This document shows positions 16,401 to 29,400 of a stretch of DNA of 55,859 nt, piece by piece. The notes under the pieces were generated by a model. That model saw nothing but the letters and a program-made list of their open reading frames with translations. It ran no database searches and had not been told where the DNA came from. The translations under genes and the position numbers were made by a program. The stretch lies in assembly GCA_000388065.2 (NCBI GenBank), contig KB932215.1. One strand, 5' to 3'. Within the stretch, counting starts at the first letter, position 1, and every line of letters starts with the position of its first letter. Source of the stretch: Fonticula alba ATCC 38817 (taxonomy: Eukaryota > Protista > Nucleariida).

Positions 16401-18786
16401 AGACACCGCCACCGAGGAGGTTGTGGCCGCCGTGGCGGGGACATCGCCGGCCGTGGCCGGCCCCTGCCCGGATGGCGGCAGCGTGCTGGTGGTGACCGTC
16501 AGCCGGGGGGTGTCGGAGCGGGCCGACCGGGCACGGCCGCCGGCCGGAGAGCCTGGCGCCGGGTCCGGGCTGTCGGCCGATGTGCCGGGCCCTGCGGGCT
16601 CCTGGCCCGGCCGGCCGCCGAAGGTGTACCGGCGGATCCACCGCCGGGCATTGGCACTGAGCTTGGCATTCATGCTGGGGCCGGAGGAAGAGGAGGAGGA
16701 GGGGGGCGTGGTGGCGGCGCCGGCGGATGCCCCGGGCATGGGGCCCAGAGGCCGGCGACAGGCCAGGCAGGCGGGCCCGGCAGCCTGGCCCACCGCGTCG
16801 GGGCCCTCCTCATCCGAGCGACAGTAGTCGGCCTCCTCGTCGGAGGTGCCGCGCTCGTCCTCGAGACAGGTGGCGCAAAGCCCGGCCGGCGGGGCGCCCG
16901 GGCCGGCGCCGCTCGGAGACACCGGGGCCGGGCCCGGGCCCGGGCCCGGGCCCGGGCCGGCGCGGCGCGCAGCCAGGCGGTGCTCCTCGCGGGCCATGCG
17001 CCGCGCGTGGGCCCGCTGCCGGTGCTGGTGCAGGAAATTCAAGTGCGACGCCACCAGCGACCCGAAGAACATGCCCACCGCCTCGGAGGCCGGGTCGTAC
17101 AGGCGAACGGCCGCCGATCGCCGGGCCGCCGACATGGGGCACAGGCTGGGCCCCGGGCACCGGGGCCCACACAGGAACTCCCAGCCTTCGGGCGCGGAGT
17201 CGGCCCCGGCGAAGAGGCCCGGCACGTCGAGCGAGGAGCCGGAATCGTCGGCCAGGGCGGGCAGGCTGTGCCCGGCGGCCCCGGCCCCGCCCGGCCCCAC
17301 CGTCGACACGGTGGAGGTGATGGCCGCCGCGGCCGCCGGCGCGGAGGAGGCCGACCGGCCGACCTGCCAAAGCCGGCGCTTGCGCGGGGTCATGGCCCCG
17401 GCGGGGCCCGGCTGGGCCGTCGCCTCCGACGGCGCCTGGCCCGCGTCCGCGCCCGGCGCAAGGGGATACAGGTCGGCCGGGCAGCCGGCCCCGGGCATCG
17501 GGGCGAAGGTGCTGGCCGAGGGCACCGCCGCCGCCGGCCCGAGGGCCAGGTGTCCATGGAAGGCGCAATCGTAGTCATCCTCGAAGAGGACAATCGGATC
17601 CTCGAGGCTGCCGTCGCCGGCCGCATGGCGCGCCGGGTCGAGGGAGGACCCGCGCCGGGCCCCGGGGCCCGGGCCCCGGCCGGGGTACGGGCCGCTGTCG
17701 GGGCCGTCGCCCGAGCGCGCGCGCCGCCCTGCCGCTGACCCGGCATCCTCGAGGGCCCCGGGGCCGGGGGGGTGGCCGCGCCGGCCGGCCCCGGGCCCGG
17801 GCGCATGGTACGGGTAATCCGGCGACAGGGGATGTGCGAGGCCGCCATGGAAGTCGAACTCGAAACTGCTGTCCGAAGCGAGGTGGTAATCGAGGACTAT
17901 CCGCGAGCAAGAGGGGGGGGATGAGGGCCAGTCAGCGCATGCACAGCGGGGCGGCGGCGAGGGCGGCGGCGAGGGCGAGGGCGAGGGCGAGGGCGAGGCA
18001 GGAGGGACGGAAGAGCAACAGGCAAGGGGGNNNNNNNNNNNNNNNNNNNNNNNNNNNNNNNNNNNNNNNNNNNNNNNNNNNNNNNNNNNNNNNNNNNNNN
18101 NNNNNNNNNNNNNNNNNNNNNNNNNNNNNNNNNNNNNNNNNNNNNNNNNNNNNNNNNNNNNNNNNNNNNNNNNNNNNNNNNNNNNNNNNNNNNNNNNNNN
18201 NNNNNNNNNNNNNNNNNNNNNNNNNNNNNNNNNNNNNNNNNNNNNNNNNNNNNNNNNNNNNNNNNNNNNNNNNNNNNNNNNNNNNNNNNNNNNGGTCGGT
18301 CAGCGAGGCCCAGGGGGCGGGAGGACATGCCACCGGGAAAAGGGCGGGAGGGGCCGGCCGGCCAGCCGGCGGACGTACTCTCCGAGGTGCCGGGCACGAT
18401 GACGCGAATGGCCCCGGAGGGGGAGATATCGGTGACGGTGGAGGTCAGGAGCGGGGCCCGGGGGCCGGCAGCCGGGCGGGGCCCGGCGGAACTGGCCGCC
18501 GGCGCCGGCGACCCGGCCGCTGACGTGGCCCCGGCCGGCGTGGGGGCCAGGACCGGGGACCCGGGGGCCGCGGCCGGCGATCCGGCCGCCGACCCGGACA
18601 GCAGCGCCTGGAAGAGGCGCCGGTCCAGGCGATCGGCCACGCGTGCCCGGCGCCCGGCCAGGGCAATTTCCTCCTCGGCGGCGGCTTGGGCCTCTTCCTG
18701 TTCGCGGCGGCGCCGGTCTTGGTGCGTGGCCACCAGCTGGCGCTGGTGCTGGTCCGGGGTCAGGGCGGTGGGCACCGTGGTGGTGA

Positions 18787-19596: not shown

Positions 19597-22500
19597 CGGC
19601 GGGGGACGGAGAGGGGTGCCGCCGGGGGCGCAACGTCCCGGGCCGAGGGTCGCCTACTGAGAAAGCTCCGCCAGGCGGCGGGCCGCGTGCCGGAGCGGCC
19701 TGTGTGCCCGGCCACGACCAGCGGGATCTGCCACGGGACTAGACGCCCGGGCGCCTCCCGGCCCGGCGGGGCAACGATCCGGCCCATCTTCCGCCGAACG
19801 CTTGCCGCCGGGTGCGAGGCCCGGGTGCGAGGCCGAGGCGCCGGACACATATGATCCGTATGCCGCGAGGCCCCCGGCCCGGGGGGAGGCCTTCCGAGAC
19901 AAAGGCGTGTGTGCGCACGGGCGCGGCGCCGGGAAAAAATCCCAGGCGCCCTGTGTGTCGGCAGGCCGGCGCGGCGGGCCGTTGTCAGTTAGCCGGCGGC
20001 CGCGGCGCGGCAGGGGGCCCCGCGCCGGAGGGCTGGCAGCTGGATCGCGCAGTGGCCGCTCCCGCCACCCGGCCGGGCGCGCCGTTTCCCGCAGGAGGAG
20101 GGCGGCCTGCCGCGCCCCTGGCAGGGTCTTAACCACACGCACCCCGGTCTACGGCCGAGCCGCCCGGGGGGGGGGGGGGGAGGGCAGCCGGGCGTGAGCG
20201 CCTCCCGGCGAGTCCCGCCTCCGCCGCCCGGCCCCCCCGGGCTGGGCCCTTCTGCGGCGCCCGGCCGGCAGGCCGAGAAATAGGCCGGAGGCAGGAATGG
20301 GACTACTTTTCCCACGCAGGGTTTCAAACGACCTGCCGCGATGCCGGGTCCCGCGCCCGGGGCCGGGCCGACGAGAGCGAGAGAGAGCGCCCGGCGCGAG
20401 GCAGGCGCGCGACCACAGGGAGCCAGGCATGCGGGCGGGCGGGGGGCATTAGCGAGCAGGGAAAGGCCCCCCGGCCGGGGTGCGGGCGTGTACGTGGCCG
20501 GACCGGACCGGCTGGCGCCCCTCCAGGCTTAACCACCTCCGGGCGGGCGCGGCCGGCTCGGTGGCCCTGCCGGCGTTCGCCCGGGCCAGGTCCGGGCTTT
20601 TGGGGCGCCCGCGCGCGGGGGAGGAGGGGGGACACAAGCGCCGGCATGCTGGTGCGCATGTGAAAGCACCCTGCCTCCGCGGGGGCCGCCAAGGGCCGGG
20701 CAGGCTAGACCAAGCCTCCCGCCGGCCGGGGCCCGTCAGAGGACCCTCGCGTGTGCGCGCGCGCGCGCGCGGATCAAGGAGGGGCCCGAGCGGCCGGGCG
20801 CCGCTCGGCATTCAAGGCCGGCCCTTCTTTCCGCCCGGGCGTCTACCACATCGGGCAGGGGGCGACCGGCGAGTGACCCGGCGGCCGCAACAGCAACCGG
20901 GGCCACGGTGGCAGGCCCCAGCCAAGAATGGCGAGGCAACATGGCAGCAGCCGATAGCGGCACGCCGCCGCTGCCCCGGCGGCGGCGGCGGCGGTGTCGC
21001 GCGCGCGCGCGCGAGCCCAGGCGCCGGAGGCAGGCTGGGGACCAGGAAGGCGCGCACGGGGGGGCCGGCGGTATTGGCGCGCAAGGCGGGCGGCTTGGCA
21101 GATGGCACGTGCGCGCCGGTCATGCCCGGACCGCGAGACCACGCGCCCGCCGGCCCCTGCGTCCTCCGCGCGATCACGCGCCGCCGCGCCCCTCCCACAA
21201 GGACACCCAACCCTCGGCGGAGGGGAGCACAGGCGATGCTAATGGCTGCCCGCGGCCCCGGGGGGCGGTCCCCACGCCGGCAATAACAAGTCCGCCATGC
21301 GAAAGGGCTTCGGCCCGGCCGTGCAGCGAACCGCGCAGCCCCGCATCCTTGGGGGGGGGGGGGGGGCTGACGATCGCGCCGGGCCGGCACGTTCGCGCAA
21401 AGACAGGAACATGCGCCCGCGCGCCGAGACACTTTCGACGGGTGGAAAAAGAAAAGGAAGAAAAAAGAAACGGCGCGCTCGGGTCCGTGCCGTCCGCGGT
21501 CCAGACACCCCCCCCCCCCCCCGCCCGCCCGCCCGCCCCCGCACGCACGCGGGGCGACGGGCCCGGCCGGCCGGCCTGGGGGTCTGAGCACGAAGGGCAC
21601 GGGGGGCGGGGGGTTCGGGGCGCCCGGGGGAGAAGGGGTTCCCCGGCTCTCGCGGGCCTGGTCTTTCTCGCCGGGCGGGGGGGGGGGGTCGTTGGGTACG
21701 CTCGCCTCGGTATGCGAACGAGGTGTTTGTGCGCGCGCGCGCGTGCCCATCGGCACCCACGCCCCGGCGCGCGGCGGCCGGTGTCTGGGGCCCGACACCC
21801 GGCGCGGGGGGGGGCGGAGATTCTCTCGGCCCGCGGAAGAGGTCCCCCGCGCGACCGGGCCTTCCGAAAAGGGCGCGGACATGAGATTGTCGAATGGTGG
21901 TGTTGTTGTTTTTTGTTTTTTGTTTTCTTTCCCCCTCGCCCCGCCCGGACTGTTCCACTGCGGCTCGGGCGCGGGGCGGTGTCGTGTGCCGCGCCCGTGC
22001 GCAAATCTTCCCTTCCGCTCTCTCCCCCCCCCTCACACCCCATCACCGCGCCCGATGTTCAGGCGGCCCTTTGGCTGGTTGACCCGCGGGGGGAGGGCCA
22101 AGCATGCTCCCGTCAGCCTCCGCCCCCNNNNNNNNNNNNNNNNNNNNNNNNNNNNNNNNNNNNNNNNNNNNNNNNNNNNNNNNNNNNNNNNNNNNNNNNN
22201 NNNNNNNNNNNNNNNNNNNNNNNNNNNNNNNNNNNNNNNNNNNNNNNNNNNNNNNNNNNNNNNNNNNNNNNNNNNNNNNNNNNNNNNNNNNNNNNNNNNN
22301 NNNNNNNNNNNNNNNNNNNNNNNNNNNNNNNNNNNNNNNNNNNNNNNNNNNNNNNNNNNNNNNNNNNNNNNNNNNNNNNNNNNNNNNNNNNNNNNNNNNN
22401 NNNNNNNNNNNNNNNNNNNNNNNNNNNNNNNNNNNNNNNNNNNNNNNNNNNNNNNNNNNNNNNNNNNNNNNNNNNNNNNNNNNNNNNNNNNNNNNNNNNN

Positions 22501-23234
22501 NNNNNNNNNNNNNNNNNNNNNNNNNNNNNNNNNNNNNNNNNNNNNNNNNNNNNNNNNNNNNNNNNNNNNNNNNNNNNNNNNNNNNNNNNNNNNNNNNNNN
22601 NNNNNNNNNNNNNNNNNNNNNNNNNNNNNNNNNNNNNNNNNNNNNNNNNNNNNNNNNNNNNNNNNNNNNNNNNNNNNNNNNNNNNNNNNNNNNNNNNNNN
22701 NNNNNNNNNNNNNNNNNNNNNNNNNNNNNNNNNNNNNNNNNNNNNNNNNNNNNNNNNNNNNNNNNNNNNNNNNNNNNNNNNNNNNNNNNNNNNNNNNNNN
22801 NNNNNNNNNNNNNNNNNNNNNNNNNNNNNNNNNNNNNNNNNNNNNNNNNNNNNNNNNNNNNNNNNNNNNNNNNNNNNNNNCCCCCCCCCGCCCCCCGGCC
22901 CCCGGCCCCCGGCCCCCGCTCCCGCGTGCGGGGGACATGTACGACCGCCCGCTCCGGGCGATGCGGTGCGGCTTTTATGGGGCGCGCGGGAAGTCCGCGC
23001 GCGGCCGATGGCGGCGGGCCCGCGCCACCCGACGCCCATGGCATCGAAGCCCCCTCTCCCGCATATATACACGCACCAAGGACAAAGCAAAGAAGGGGGG
23101 TGGGAGGAGGGAGAGGGCCGCGGCCGCGGTGGGGCAGGGCACGCCCGCGCGTGTGTGTGTGAGTGTGGGTGGGTGCATGCGTGCGTGCGAGTGCGTATGT
23201 GCACAGGCACGACAGCCGGCGGGCGCCGCGGCCG

Positions 23235-23681
23235 TCAGTGCCGCGCAGCGCCCCCTTCCGAGTCGGAGGAACTTTCTCCGGACGACGGCCGGTCAGCCGG
23301 GGCCATCAGATGTGCCAAGTCCATGCGCCGAGGCAGGAGCTCCATGGCTGTGCCCGGTCCCGGCGGGGGCGGCACCACGGTCCCCGGCCCCATCACCCCC
23401 GGCCCGAGCGAGGGACCGGCCATGCCTGACAGTTGAAGGGCCCCGGGCGCCAGAGCGGCCCCGGGCAATGTGCCCGCTCCCGGCCAGAGGTCCCCTCCAA
23501 GCAGGACCGGCATGTTCATCATGGGCAGCGACTGGTGCTGTTGTTGCAGCAGCTGCAGCAGCTGTTGTTGCTGCTGCTGTTGCTGTAGCTGCTGTAGCTG
23601 CTGTTGCTGCTGCAGTTGCTGCTGCTGCTGTAGTTGCTGCTGCTGCTGCAGTTGCTGCTGCTGCTGTAGTTGCTGCTGCAA

Positions 23682-23715
<34 letters not shown>

Positions 23716-25791
23716 CACGAAGAACTGAGAGTGTCCATGGCGCCGCCTCGGCTGCCACTGGCCAGGAGGGTCGCCAAGAGGGTCACCAGCTGGGCCTCAT
23801 CCGTCACGGCGGACAGCGTGTCGAGGGCCCCCGGCGGGAGGACAATGCGCGAGGCAGCCAGGTCCGACAGAAGTGTCGACAGGAGTGACATGGCCATCTC
23901 CGAGAGGGTCAGCGGGGCCGCTGGCTGTGCCAGGAACGCCGGCTGCTGCTGCTGCTGCTGTGGCTGTTGCAGAAAGGGCAGCTCCTCCGGGAGCGGCTGA
24001 GCGGGCCGGACCGGCTCGGCGGGCTGGACGGGCGGCGCCATGGGAAGCAGCTGGTACAGGGAGGCCGGGTCTGCCAGTTCCGGGCCCCGGCCCGGGGCTG
24101 ATGCCCCCATGGCTCGGGGGCTGCGGGCCGGGGACACGTTGTCTCTCGGCGCCGCCGTCGGTGCTGCGGCTGCCGGCATTGCGGCCGCCGGCGCTGCTGA
24201 CGCCGGCCTCGACGGGCCCGGGCCCGGGCCCGGGGCCGCGGCCGCGGCCGCGCCACCGCCAGGCGAAGGGCCCGGCTGCTGGGGGCCGGCCCGGCGGTTG
24301 TGCCGGCCCGAGCGCCGCTGGCCAGTCAGCCCGGCCTCGCGCAAACGCAACGACACCAGCGGCACCGAGCGATTCACTCGCCGCGCGATGTCGGTATACG
24401 ACCAGCCCAGCTGGTAGAGCTCGATGATTTTGAGCCGAATCAGCTCCTTCACCTCGCCCGGGGACACGGCAATCGGGCTGGCCTGGCGACTGGACGAGCA
24501 GCTGGAGGAAGGGCCCTCCCCCGTGGCCGAGGGCGGATCGGCGCGGGCCGGGGCCGCCGGCCCGGCGGCCATGGCCGGGGGCTTGTCGTCGGCCGGGCGC
24601 TTGTCGCCGGACCGGCGCTCGGCCGACCGCCGGCCGCCCGCCGGCAAGGCCCCCACCTGTGGCCGGGCCAAAAGCATGCCGCTCGGCGCCGGCAACAGGG
24701 CCCCCGGTGCCAGGAGCAGGTCCCCGGGCGGCGGCAGGACCAAGTCCCCGGACGGCGTCAGCAGCAGCTCCCCATGGTGCGAGGGAAGCAGCAGCTCCCC
24801 CCGGTGTGGCCAGCCGCCGGCCGGGGGCGGCCTCGGCGCCGGGGGGGGCCGCTCCGGCGACGCGGCCGACCCCGAGAGCGGCGCGAGCACCGGCGACGAA
24901 GCGCCCGCCGGCTCCGGCGTCGCGGACCCCGGGCCCGGGGCCAGCGAGGGGACCAGCACCCCGGGCGAGGGAAGCACCGCCGGGAAGGCCGACGACGTGC
25001 CCTCCACCGGGTCCCGGCCCGGGGTGGTGCCAGGCAAAGGGCCGCACGGTGGCCGAAGGGCCGATGTCGGCGAGAGCGGCGGCGGGCTCGCGGCCGGGCA
25101 GGGGCCCACGGACGAAGAGGAGGCCGAGCCCGAGGATGATGGCACCACCGCCGGCCGGGCAGTGGCCGACATGGGCGCCACCACCGGGCCCATGGGCGTG
25201 GCAGACCCGGGCACCGGGGCCGGGGGGGCCGAGCGGGCCGCCGCCGAGGCCCGAGCCCCGGCCAGCGGCCCCACGCTCGGCTTCTCCACCAACAGCGCAG
25301 CCGCCACCGCCTCCACCAGGGCCGCTGTGGCATGGGTGTGGCCGGGGCCCCCGGTGGCCGGCTTGGTCGGTGCGGCCGGAGTCGGGGGCCCGGGCACACT
25401 GGTGCTCGAGGTGCCGGCCGTGGCCGTGGCGCGGGCCTTGCCGGCGCCGGAGCCAGGGCGTTTGGGCGACCGCGGGGAGGCTGCCGGCAGGAGCCCCGCC
25501 GACCGGAGCTCCCGCACTCGCAGATTGATGAGCGACGTCGACCGGCCCAGCATGCTGGCAATCTCCTCCAGCGAGTGCCCATCACTGTAGAGCTCGGCCA
25601 CGCGCAGGCGCGAGGCGTCGGCACTGGCTGATCGGGCCCCATCCAGGGGGAACCCCCGGTAGTGCCGAGAGGAGCTGCTCTCCAGCCGCTGACGCAGGAG
25701 GCCGGTCGAGGAAGCCGGCTCGCTGGGGCCCGGCGACAGGGGCTCCTCCCGGGGCTCCGGTGCCCCGGGCCCGGGGATGGCTGGCGGTGGC

Positions 25792-25848
<57 letters not shown>

Positions 25849-26471
25849 GGCTGCTGCTGCTCTGGCTGCTCTGGCTGCTTTGGCTGCTCTGGCTGCTTTG
25901 GCTGCTGTTTTCGTTGGCCCTGGTGCTGCTGGGCCTGCCTTGTCTGTGGCCCATGCTGCGCCTCGCGCTGCTGCTCGGTCTGGTCCTCACGCTGCGGCTC
26001 GCACTGCGCCTCGCGCTGCGGCTCGGTCTGCTCCCCGCGCTGCGGCTCACACTGCTCCTCGCGCTGCGGCTCGGTCTGCTCCCCGCGCTGCTGCTCCGGC
26101 TCGGGCTCCTGATCTTGGCTCGGCGGCGATGGCGACAACAAGGATGAGGCAGACGCCCCGGAGTTGACCAGCGAGCAGGGGGACAGGGGCAGCCCCAGGG
26201 ACGAGGAGCTGGGCTCGCTGGAGGGGCATGTCGACGCGGTGGCTGACGACCGGCTGCCGGGGCGCGATGTGACGGCGCCCGGCGGCGAGGCCTGCACATG
26301 GCGGCCTGGCATGGGGGCCTTGCGGGTGCTGTCCGGCGTCAGCGGCTTGCCGGGGCTTGGCGCTGGCCGGCTACTGGCCGCTGACGAGCCATCATCACCG
26401 GCAGCACCGGTGGGCGCCGGCTGCGCCTCGCACGAAATGGGTGACCCCTCGCCAGTGTCCCTGGAGAGCAT
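23235..26471 (-). CDS. PolyQ-rich putative transcription factor with two trihelical HTH modules (paired/Tc1-like), 1,078 aa
   Basis: Single open frame from ATG 26471 to TGA 23235. HTH1 RLRVAELYSDGHSLEEIASMLGRSTSLINLRVRE at ~25505-25612; HTH2 IRLKIIELYQLGWSYTDIARRVNRSVPLVSLRLRE at ~24335-24440. Basic stretch RRSGRHNRR follows HTH2. Two polyQ tracts. A CAG acceptor sits just before the ATG (26473-26475), so an upstream exon is possible. Confidence 0.78.
23533..23711 (-). repeat. Coding Leu-punctuated polyQ tract (~60 aa)
   Basis: CAG/CAA runs with periodic Leu codons. Confidence 0.93.
25798..26100 (-). repeat. Coding (CAG)16, QPE/QPK repeats and a 24-bp (8-aa) tandem repeat
   Basis: EQTEPQRE/EQCEPQRG-type units followed by QPKQPEQ and Q16. 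Confidence 0.9.
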
Positions 26472-29400
26472 CCTGCCGAGGGAGGACAGTCATGAATGGG
26501 GGCGTGCCAGTCGGGGAAAGGAGGCGGGAGGGGGAGGCAGGGGGGTGGGGACGAGGGGAAGGCGTGCCCTCACAACAGGTGGCAGTGGATGGATGGACGT
26601 GGGCGACAGCGCCGCCAGGGGCTCCAATCCGGAAGCGAAGGACGCGGCACGCGGACTTGCACCCGACCGCACGGCTGGCAGGGCGTCAACGATGTGACCT
26701 GTCGTGAGCAAGGCGCCAGGAAGAGGCGCACCGGGTAGCAGGGGGGGGGGGGGGGGCAGAGGGGTGGAGGGGGAAAGGCCTGCTTGCGAACAAGGGGCAA
26801 GGCAGGGAAAGACACCGTCCACACACGCGTGCCCAGACACACACACACACACACGCACACACGCACGTGCGCGCATACACACGCAGGCAGGTGGGGAAGG
26901 GGAGAAACAGGGATGGACACGGGAAAGGGGCAGGTAAGGGGTGAGAGAGGGGGAGCAGGGGGCAAAGGGGAGAGAGAGAGGGGGGGGGGCGAGGTGGATG
27001 GAACGGTGTGCCAGCGAGGCTGGGCCGCTCGGGAGCCACCGGTCCCCATCAATGGGACCGGGTAGTGAGACGGGCACGGTGGGGGGGGGGGGACATTGGT
27101 TGGGAGCGCGGCAGGGCTGCTGGCCTTCCCCTGCTCCCTCGGCCAATGTGCATGGCCGTCTCGCGCCTTTTGCCTGTCTCACCCGGCCAGGCGTGCCCAT
27201 CTTTCCGGGCCGGCTGGCGGCAGAAGGGATGGGGGGGGGGAATACTTCACGATTTGGATGTCGGCCGACGGCGGGACATGGCGCCAGCGGCGGCCGGNNN
27301 NNNNNNNNNNNNNNNNNNNNNNNNNNNNNNNNNNNNNNNNNNNNNNNNNNNNNNNNNNNNNNNNNNNNNNNNGGGGGGGGGGGGACTGAGGCACGCGCTC
27401 TGGGAAATTATCGGCCAGAAGAAACGGTCAGGCACGCGGCCCGGGCGTGCGTAGCTCAGCAGGGCAGGCCGAGGGGGCCGAGCGACTTGGACCCGGCCGG
27501 CATGTGACGGACTCCCATCTCGCTCGCCCTGCCGGCGAGATGCGGCACGGGGCTGGACTCGCGGCCGGGTTGCCCGAATCCGCGACCAGACACACGCCGC
27601 GGCCAGCCGCCCTTGCCCCAACCCGGCCCGTCCTCCCCCCCTCCCCCTGGTCCAGGGCCACCCCGCCTGCCCCGCTCGGACCCTGCTCACCGACGGCCCT
27701 CACCTTCGGCCGTGCACGCGCGGCCGCCGGCCCGTGCACAGGCAGGCAGACAGCACATGCGCCCCACACGCGCCGCCCATGCACCCGTGCATCGGAACTA
27801 AACGACAGCTGAGCCCGGGGTAGGGGGCCGGCCGGCCGGTCGGTCGGTCGGTCGGCCGGCCAAGAGTGTGTGTGTGTGTGTGTGACTCTCGAAATGCTCC
27901 GCCGCGCGGAGGAGCTGGTGCGGGGAGATGCCTCACAAAGCCGGATTCGGGCAAAGGGGGGCGCACCTGGAAGGGGGGGGGGGCAGGGTGGAGCCGGCCA
28001 AAGTGGGAGGAGATCCGTGAACGCACGTCCTGAACAGGGGTCCCGGTCGCAGGCGGGTGGCGGAGGCGTGCACGCAATCACCGGCGCCGCAGTTGCCTAC
28101 CCTGTGTCTCGCTCTGGGGGGGTGGGGGGGGGGGGGTGGGGTGGGGCGTGGGCGGGTGCTTCCTTCGACGGACCCTGTCCAGTGAGGGGAGGTAGGAGCA
28201 CCGACTTGCTAATGATTATCAGAGTTGTGCGGGGGAGGGTGGGGTGGGGGATGGGGCGCGCGCGCGCGCACGGAAGAACGCACGCAGCACCGGGGAAGAG
28301 AGCTCAAGTGAAAGGAAGAGGGACGGCGGGCGCGGGGGAGGGGCAGGGGAAAAGAGAGAGAGAGGGGGGCGGGGGAGAGCGAGAATCAGGGGAGGCGTAT
28401 TGCGGTCGTTGGGTAGGCCCAGGCCCCGCGGCGGGGCCCCAGGAATACGCCGTGGGGGGGCCCCCCCCCCCCCCCCCTCTCTCTCCCTCTCTCCCTCTCT
28501 CTGTCTATTTCCTTACCCCCAGCCTTTTCGGGGGGGGGGGGGGGGTGCTGTTTCGGACCCCCGCAATGTCTCTGGAGTCCTCCTCAAAAAAGGGGAGTGC
28601 CCAAGTCAGGGTGCCTATCCCAGGGCGGGGCCAGGAAGTGTGTGTGATGGGCGCTCGCGAGAGCCTGCTCGCGCGCTCGAGAAGCCTCGCGCTTCCGGGG
28701 GGGCGGGGAAATTGTGGAGTCAAGATGACCGGGGGCGGGGGGACGCGATTGCGCGCGGGCGCACGCGGCCCGGGGCCCCAGCGGGTCGGGCCATCACAGA
28801 CTGCCGTGCGCCCGGCGGATGAGCGCCGGAAACCATGCTCCGAGGCCGGTCGCGGGGGGCTCATGTGAAAGAAACACCTTGTGACCGAGAGAGCGAGCGA
28901 AAAAGCGTGAGCCTCCGGAGTTTTGGTGTAGTGTGTGATGTGCCTGTGCAGCCAGGCCCGGGCGCCGGAGGCGGCCGCCCCCTGCCCGGCCTTGCGGAAG
29001 CGCGCGCGATCGGGCCCCGCCTACGCTTCGTACTTGGGAGCCCCGGAACGCCAGATCAGCCAACGTGCCCCTAGACACGGCCGTTTTCGATGACCGGACG
29101 ACCGTGGAGCCTACCTGCCCAGATGGACACGGGGGCCTCCCGGGCGCGTACGGCCCCCCCCCCCCCCCCCCCGCCCGCCCGCCCGTCTGTCCGCCCGCCC
29201 GCCCGCCCGCCCTCGCCGGGCCCCATGATGGGGGGAGCAATGCGCCCGGCTCCCACCCCTGTCCCGGCCGGCGGCGGGCAACCGACTTTGTGGTTGCCCG
29301 CCGCCCGGAAGGCCGGGTGCCGGGCGATGTTTCCACCGGGGGCGGGGGGGGGGGGGAGGGCCTGGCCGCGCGTTTGCTCGCCCGGCCGCACCAACACCGG

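Follow-up and report, generated by a model that had tools for sequence, protein, structure and literature searches.

The subject of this study is a gene of the nucleariid Fonticula alba ATCC 38817, located on the minus strand of a 55,859-nucleotide stretch of contig KB932215.1 (NCBI assembly GCA_000388065.2), to which we refer as the window. The gene encodes a 1078-residue protein containing two copies of a helix-turn-helix (HTH) module, HTH1 and HTH2. A preliminary description, made from the DNA letters, had pointed out the second copy as resembling the PAI helices of the animal Pax paired domain. We found that the gene encodes an ordinary pair of HTH_23/HTH_38-type modules within an orphan, transcription-factor-like protein. 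Judged from the sequence comparisons presented here, the likeness to Pax1/9 appears to be a coincidence within the large HTH superfamily and not a specific tie to the paired domain. The protein is probably an orphan, species-restricted DNA-binding regulator of Fonticula built on a generic prokaryote- or transposase-type HTH pair, with a coincidental match to Pax.

Two Copies of a Generic HTH Module in a Disordered Protein

Translation of the minus strand at positions 24335-24440 gives IRLKIIELYQLGWSYTDIARRVNRSVPLVSLRLRE, which lies inside the called 1078-residue gene and confirms that the HTH motif noticed there is real; translating the plus strand of the same interval gave nothing comparable to the HTH peptide. 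The preliminary description had proposed an HMMER comparison of both HTHs with Pfam. In this comparison, the whole protein matched HTH_23 (PF13384) with 44.3 bits (E 1.3e-11) and HTH_38 (PF13936) with 32.6 bits (E 6.8e-08), exceeding the Pfam gathering scores of 24.6 and 27 bits, respectively. As separate 63-residue segments, HTH1 and HTH2 each exceeded some Pfam cut-off alone. HTH_28, Sigma70_r4_2, and HTH_24 gave weaker scores at or under their cut-offs with the whole protein. In transposases of the IS30/IS630/Tc1 types and in serine recombinases, modules of the HTH_23/HTH_38 kind serve as the DNA-binding part at the N-terminus; they also occur in many prokaryotic regulators and multi-HTH proteins. 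A search of NCBIfam returned weak matches only, to the Csa3 HTH, Cbp1, and an IS630 transposase, and a protein-atlas feature search yielded nothing but generic HTH clusters below threshold (score 0.76).

Neither the whole protein nor either 63-residue module matched PAX (PF00292), HTH_Tnp_Tc3_1/2, HTH_SB, or HTH_Tnp_Tc5 in Pfam at E<=10. The absence of a DDE domain stated in the preliminary description is supported by the lack of any DDE-type family among the Pfam and NCBIfam matches of the protein at the same threshold, and no transposase, recombinase, receiver, or sigma domain was found attached to the protein in the Pfam scan. We also considered a Myb/SANT reading, prompted by one relative (P0072) that also matches Myb, and rejected it, as the protein has no Pfam Myb match. 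By eye, the spacing from the Trp to the conserved Ile-Ala pair differs from that of a canonical Myb repeat.

The two modules, about 390 residues apart, share 47% identity over 34 amino acids (pairwise E 1e-9). At the DNA level, they agree best at codon position 2 (23/34) and least at codon position 3 (12/34), indicating an old duplication that has been preserved at the protein level. A profile made from the two modules detected no third copy in the open reading frame (ORF) and none in the six-frame translation of the rest of the window. HTH1 and HTH2 are old internal duplicates of one three-helix module of the HTH_23/HTH_38 kind. Because a single-sequence AlphaFold model was poor, with a predicted local distance difference test score (pLDDT) of 63 and two long helices, we used an AlphaFold2 model of HTH2 based on an 80-module alignment. 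This model has three helices with core pLDDT values of 94-97 and no strand, in agreement with a trihelical fold. The coil following HTH2 is rich in Gly, Pro, and Ala, with pLDDT values of 57-67. The third helix of HTH2, presumably the recognition helix, has the counterpart TSLINLRVRE in HTH1.

The protein is mostly intrinsically disordered. Pro (15.6%), Ala (13.5%), Ser (11.5%), Gln (11.0%), and Gly (9.2%) together make up about 61% of its 1078 residues, and two polyglutamine runs comprise 16 and 10 residues, in accordance with the polyglutamine and Pro/Ser-rich regions noted before. The suggestion that the HTH is of transposase or bacterial/phage type fits the HTH_23 and HTH_38 matches and the solved and database relatives described below, whereas the domestication of a transposase and a role as a transcription factor would each be an inference.

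The Resemblance to Pax

The starting point of the Pax comparison was an ungapped alignment of HTH2 with a string of the Pax1/9 PAI helices. The string is genuine, as it matches Pax5, Pax8, Prd, and Pax6 at E-values from 7e-14 to 6e-10, and our recount reproduced the 16 identities over 33 positions, with a BLOSUM62 raw score of 56. With standard ungapped BLOSUM62 parameters, this score corresponds to about 29 bits, which is not significant against a database of the size of Swiss-Prot. HTH1 shares only 9/33 with the same string, and the commonest match of other modules to HTH2 is 9-10/33. Pax5, Pax6, Pax8, and Prd share 11-13/33 with HTH2 and 7-9/33 with HTH1. When the five Pax strings are compared, HTH2 is identical at 7 of the 12 variable positions and at 9 of the 21 invariant ones, of which HTH1 matches 5. 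The matches thus favor positions at which Pax proteins vary, the opposite of what is expected from family membership.

In a Foldseek search against Swiss-Prot models, Pax-9 and Pax-1 appeared from rank 7 onward, behind TyrR and Bin3. Pax-9 (residues 24-64) had the highest percent identity among these structure matches (44% over 41 residues, root-mean-square deviation 2.4), with a non-significant E-value of 0.26. Bacterial HTHs are equally similar: searching plasmids with HTH2 by tblastn identified a serine recombinase, Streptomyces HTH proteins, and LuxR-type response regulators with 46-52% identity over 35-40 residues, matches that are likewise non-significant and at the same level as the Pax match. 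HTH proteins of Streptomyces phages share 39% identity with HTH2. Metagenomic modules share up to 18/33 with HTH2 and, in other cases, up to 15/33 with the Pax string, showing that the Pax helices are consensus-like members of the superfamily. Scored with the two-module profile, Pax1/9 obtained 16.5 bits and the other Pax sequences 6-9 bits, and prokaryotic modules obtained up to 36 bits. The specific tie expressed by the term "Pax PAI-like" could therefore not be upheld.

The accompanying statement that the protein is not a true Pax was borne out. In addition to the missing PAX profile match, the RPC, GC, and KI residues are replaced, and the sequence preceding helix 1 of HTH2, SRQASPIAVSPGEV, does not contain the NQLGG..GRPLP β-hairpin, for which the model has no strand. 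There is also no contiguous PAI plus RED arrangement of about 128 residues: HTH1, the sole other HTH of the protein, is a second copy of the HTH2 module and sits about 390 residues upstream of it. More generally, HTH motifs of this superfamily readily show 45-50% identity to each other over stretches of 30-40 residues. The Fonticula HTH protein has no bearing on the origin of Pax genes.

Relatives in Sequence and Structure Databases

An exhaustive HMMER search with the two-module profile against 1.84 billion representatives matched 984 proteins at E<=1e-3. Each of the best 150 of these is a multi-HTH protein containing 2-16 modules; no single module scores above 36 bits, and the large totals are sums over modules. 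All 20 that we looked up among the top 150 come from metagenomes or metagenome-assembled genomes, and they match dozens of HTH families simultaneously. For ten of the 20, the source record gives a name, e.g., transposase, IS30 family transposase, sigma24, CsgD family, or NarL/FixJ. The signature xxLYxxGxSxxxIAxxLxRSxxxVxxRLxxAG is common to the multi-HTH relatives and both Fonticula modules, and one relative (P0104) has the 10-mer LVSLRLREAG in common with HTH2 among 20/43 identities. Proteins with 5-16 tandem generic HTH modules, most of them unnamed, form a large class in metagenomes, exemplified by P0001 (818 residues, 12 modules) and P0012 (1460 residues, 16 modules). Many of them are of AT-rich-type composition, with Lys, Asn, and Ile accounting for 27-38%. 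The five proteins richest in Ala, Arg, Pro, and Gly among the top 150 belong to metagenomes or another NCBI assembly, and none could be traced to Fonticula. The relative with the most GC-type composition, P0079, was rejected as a Fonticula paralogue since it belongs to another assembly, GCA_030157125.1.

Word-indexed homologue searches with residues 270-720, 668-722, and 280-332 yielded zero matches, the query itself included. When metagenome contigs were searched with HTH1 and HTH2 and contigs of prokaryotic genomes with the two-module alignment, pattern matches turned up, but none was confirmed. From these searches, which did not return the query itself, the gene appears to be species-restricted. 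The query protein is on record in the contig look-up and in the Atlas, yet it is absent from every protein-search output; protein searches may miss the proteins of this genome or strongly low-complexity proteins.

Among solved structures, the two-module profile matched the CRISPR-repeat-binding HTH protein 2lvs (E 2.2e-6), Lrp/AsnC (E 0.007), the PAI subdomain of Sleeping Beauty (E 0.01), and RcsB (E 0.045), and found no Pax at E<=5. With HTH1 alone, 2lvs was the top natural solved match (E 7.6e-4), and Protein Data Bank (PDB) sequence searches with HTH2 or HTH1 alone returned no Pax chain at E<=10. When a family profile of 80 modules was used, the Sleeping Beauty PAI became the top natural single-domain match (E 2.5e-9), and Pax6 (E 4e-4) was outranked by about 50 other HTH proteins. 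The first entry in both profile lists, the "CAP repeat" 8vd6, is a computer-designed protein (PMC12339374) and is therefore uninformative on ancestry. Foldseek neighbors in the PDB include RcsB, 2lvs, DeoR, Bin3/Sin resolvase, sigma-4 domains, IstA, NtrC, and the Trp repressor, with probabilities of 0.93-0.99 for RcsB, DeoR, resolvase, and Cbp-type HTHs; Pax5 and Tc3 followed at ranks 37 and 41. All E-values of this search were above 0.1, as expected for a domain so small. The Tetrahymena mitoribosomal protein mS45 (PDB 6z1p chain BE, ELYQKGWSIKDI) was considered and rejected, because its E-values of 0.27 with HTH2 alone and 0.075 with the two-module profile are not significant. The alignment, at mS45 residues 272-292, pairs RDDIYELYQKGWSIKDICTRY with RLKIIELYQLGWSYTDIARRV.

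Coding Evidence

The G+C content of the window is 65-79% outside N gaps, and the ORF listing contains many long, overlapping ORFs in all frames, so the ORF needed coding support. The contig look-up showed a called gene on KB932215.1 that encodes exactly this protein, in a frame uninterrupted over 3.2 kb. The G+C fractions at codon positions 1/2/3 are 0.76/0.61/0.85 for the entire ORF, 0.71/0.52/0.85 for HTH1, and 0.63/0.43/0.86 for HTH2; within both modules, the third position thus stays at 0.85-0.86 and the second falls to 0.43-0.52. The third position ranks highest in 10 of 11 segments of the ORF, the exception being the CAG-rich polyglutamine segment. Two significant HTH matches in one frame are not explained by a spurious ORF in GC-rich DNA. 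The ORF is a real protein-coding gene of Fonticula alba.

DNA near-identical to the locus exists in independent samples, because 23-67% of the 31-mers sampled from 24150-25650 are shared with DNA-type sequencing runs labelled as another organism (2025) and with a 2022 soil metagenome, the highest shares being 64-67%. The Fonticula-like DNA in these samples is perhaps a co-inhabitant or a contaminant.

Features of the Gene and Its Surroundings

The features of the gene are listed in Table 1. The N-terminus is acidic (Asp or Glu at residues 5, 8, 15, 26, and 27), unlike a mitochondrial presequence. The Arg-rich patch directly following HTH2 is possibly a nuclear signal or an extra DNA contact.

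Table 1. Coordinates of the HTH gene and its elements in the window.
Feature	Residues	Positions	Strand	Basis or remark
ORF, single exon	1078 codons + stop	23235-26471	minus	ORF listing; called gene in NCBI assembly
N-terminal Glu/Gln/Pro-rich repeats ending in 16-Gln run	120-226	25794-26114	minus	48-, 24-, and 3-nt tandem repeats
HTH1, SRLRVAELYSDGHSLEEIASMLGRSTSLINLRVRELRSA	287-325	25497-25613	minus	HTH_38 28.4 bits, HTH_23 25.6 bits
Basic, Arg-rich patch upstream of HTH2, GRRSAERRSGDKRPADDK	613-630	24582-24635	minus	Composition
HTH2 (noted motif and start of first helix)	671-712	24336-24461	minus	HTH_23 30.7 bits
HTH2 helix 1	671-687	24411-24461	minus	DSSP on AlphaFold2 model
HTH2 helix 2	692-699	24375-24398	minus	DSSP on AlphaFold2 model
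HTH2 helix 3, presumed recognition helix, VPLVSLRLRE	703-712	24336-24365	minus	AlphaFold2 model
Arg-rich patch right after HTH2, TGQRRSGRHNRRAGP	716-730	24282-24326	minus	Composition
C-terminal Gln/Leu tract	920-978	23538-23714	minus	18-nt/3-nt CAG-type repeat

A 48-nt repeat at 25956-26096 (2.9 copies, 92% match) codes for units of the EPQRE(E/A)QC type, and an 18-nt CAG-based repeat at 23532-23713 (10 copies) codes for the QQQQQL tract. Both likely vary in length among strains.

The gene is flanked by a ribosomal L17 gene on one side and a gene for a 3022-residue protein on the other. GT-rich and CA-rich simple-sequence tracts bracket the ORF at 23146-23183 and 26820-26856. They form an imperfect inverted pair of 25-37 nt, 73-88% complementary and about 3.65 kb apart, which is the sole flanking inverted pair and probably represents intergenic microsatellite rather than transposon ends. 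Ten N runs of 75-753 nt interrupt the window (e.g., 18031-18293, 22128-22880, and 27298-27372). One N run ends about 350 nt downstream of the stop codon of the HTH gene, so that the 3' flank is incomplete in the assembly.

Origin of the Modules and Possible Mode of Action

Several points weigh against an orphan, species-restricted regulator built on a generic HTH pair. Very GC-rich genomes yield many spurious long ORFs; protein and contig searches brought up neither an orthologue nor a paralogue of the whole protein; these searches may be blind to the genome's own proteins, as the query was never returned; and that the protein binds DNA, enters the nucleus, and acts as a regulator is inferred from the domain type and the composition. 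A rival explanation is that the ORF is not a working gene, be it a decaying one or one annotated in a very GC-rich, repeat-rich stretch but not expressed. The lack of a homologue in searches that missed the query itself, the tandem DNA repeats encoding much of the ORF, and the many long ORFs overlapping in all frames would suit such an explanation. We nevertheless regard it as very unlikely in view of a pair of independent and significant HTH matches sharing one frame, the strong codon-position GC signature that extends into the HTHs, the conservation between the modules at the protein level with codon position 2 at the top and position 3 at the bottom, and the unbroken reading frame of 3.2 kb. 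That HTH2 is a true divergent relative of the animal PAI is already close to being refuted. The 16/33 identity to Pax1/9, the leading percent identity of Pax-9 among the Swiss-Prot structure matches, and the Pax6 match with the module-family profile speak for it. Opposed to these are the missing PF00292 match, the absence of Pax from the PDB sequences matched by HTH2, HTH1, or the two-module profile, the lower identities of the other Pax proteins with HTH2 and of all four with HTH1, the preference for Pax-variable over invariant positions, the lack of a β-hairpin in the model and of an adjacent RED half, and the roughly 50 HTH proteins ranking above Pax6.

Two further alternatives concern the source of the modules. 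The HTHs could be the remnant DNA-binding domain of a domesticated Tc1/mariner or IS630-type transposase that lost its catalytic domain while low-complexity sequence grew. The HTH_23, HTH_38, and HTH_28 models do cover IS630/IS30/Tc1-type N-terminal HTHs, the NCBIfam IS630 transposase aligns weakly within its first 53 positions (model positions 2-53 of 299) to residues 288-339 with an E-value of 0.034, and the Sleeping Beauty PAI is matched by both the module-family and the two-module profile; in the same direction points the derivation of the paired domain from Tc1-like transposases (PMC4901127). The protein, however, contains neither a DDE domain nor a remnant of one and matches none of the Tc1-specific HTH models. 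In transposases, PAI and RED are adjacent and unlike each other, and the Fonticula HTHs are distant and 47% identical. HTHs of resolvase, LuxR/RcsB, Lrp, and DeoR score as well or better, and the only inverted repeats around the ORF are GT/CA simple sequence, although domesticated genes normally have no terminal inverted repeats (TIRs). Taken together, we find a transposase remnant quite unlikely. Alternatively, the protein could be a divergent offshoot of prokaryote-type tandem-HTH-array proteins (Cbp1/Cbp2-like), of which two modules survive, spread apart by low-complexity sequence; such a protein may bind organellar or repeated nucleic acid instead of acting as a transcription factor in the nucleus. 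This origin is suggested by the multi-module architecture (2-16 modules) of all top-150 HMMER matches, by the extended signature common to arrays and Fonticula modules, and by the two-HTH protein 2lvs as the top natural solved match. We consider it unlikely as well, because the modules number only two and are separated by about 390 residues instead of standing head to tail, the acidic N-terminus is not presequence-like, none of the top-150 matches was traced to Fonticula, and the high array scores are sums of single modules of at most 36 bits.

For the favored generic HTH pair, the source may be the prokaryote-type module pool, a transposase, or the tandem-HTH-array family. The regulator is probably nuclear. 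In the mode of action that we propose, helix 3 of each module ([ST/VP]L[IV][NS]LR[VL]RE) would enter the major groove of DNA. As the recognition helices are alike, the two modules would read similar half-sites, with some 350 residues of flexible chain connecting one reader to the other. Additional DNA contacts or nuclear import may come from the Arg-rich patches, as has been shown for the basic patches of the Pax-like proteins of Giardia (PMC3280250), and the Gln-rich tracts may act in activation or self-association. A bolder reading, to which we give rather little credence, is that an HTH of prokaryote or transposon type was recruited independently in the Fonticula lineage to form a nuclear polyglutamine transcription factor, a nuclear branch of the tandem-HTH-array module pool. 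If true, it would be a second, non-animal case of the path by which the paired domain presumably arose. If the protein is a nuclear DNA binder, it adds one more lineage-specific regulator to the small transcription-factor set of this slime-mould-like fungal relative and offers a modest example of a generic HTH recruited into a disordered eukaryotic regulator.

Comparison with Known Systems

With the animal Pax paired domain, the Fonticula protein shares the 16/33 identity to the Pax1/9 helices and the 44% over 41 residues found by Foldseek. It differs in the recognition helix (SVPLVSLRL in HTH2 and SHGCVSKIL in Pax) and in lacking the β-hairpin, the GRPLP motif, the contiguous RED half, and a match to the PAX profile. 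The PAI subdomains of Tc1/mariner transposases (Sleeping Beauty, 6urs/2m8e; Tc3, 1tc3) belong to the same fold class as the Fonticula modules, whereas the Fonticula protein has no adjacent RED, no DDE domain, no Tc1-specific Pfam match, and, as flanking inverted repeats, only the GT/CA tracts.

The Pax-like proteins Pax1 and Pax2 of Giardia show 13-20% identity to human Pax6 and were tested experimentally; without their basic patches, neither import into the nucleus nor binding to DNA takes place (PMC3280250). How they relate to transposases and to Pax has not been settled (PMC4901127). They set a precedent for a protist DNA-binding regulator called paired-like on weak similarity, and differ from the Fonticula protein in that their recognition covered an entire paired-like region of about 128 residues and was followed by experiments.

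The archaeal CRISPR-repeat-binding proteins Cbp1/Cbp2 (2lvs) and the metagenomic arrays resemble the Fonticula protein in having several copies of the same module per chain and a C-terminal "L..AG" extension. Their modules are arranged head to tail with short linkers and occupy most of the chain, whereas the Fonticula modules lie far apart, and a eukaryote offers no CRISPR context. With the members of HTH_23/HTH_38, the Fonticula modules share scores above the cut-offs, the three-helix fold, and the consensus ELYxxGxSxxxIAxxxxRSxxxV; the difference lies in the host protein, a eukaryotic, mostly disordered, polyglutamine-bearing chain of 1078 residues.

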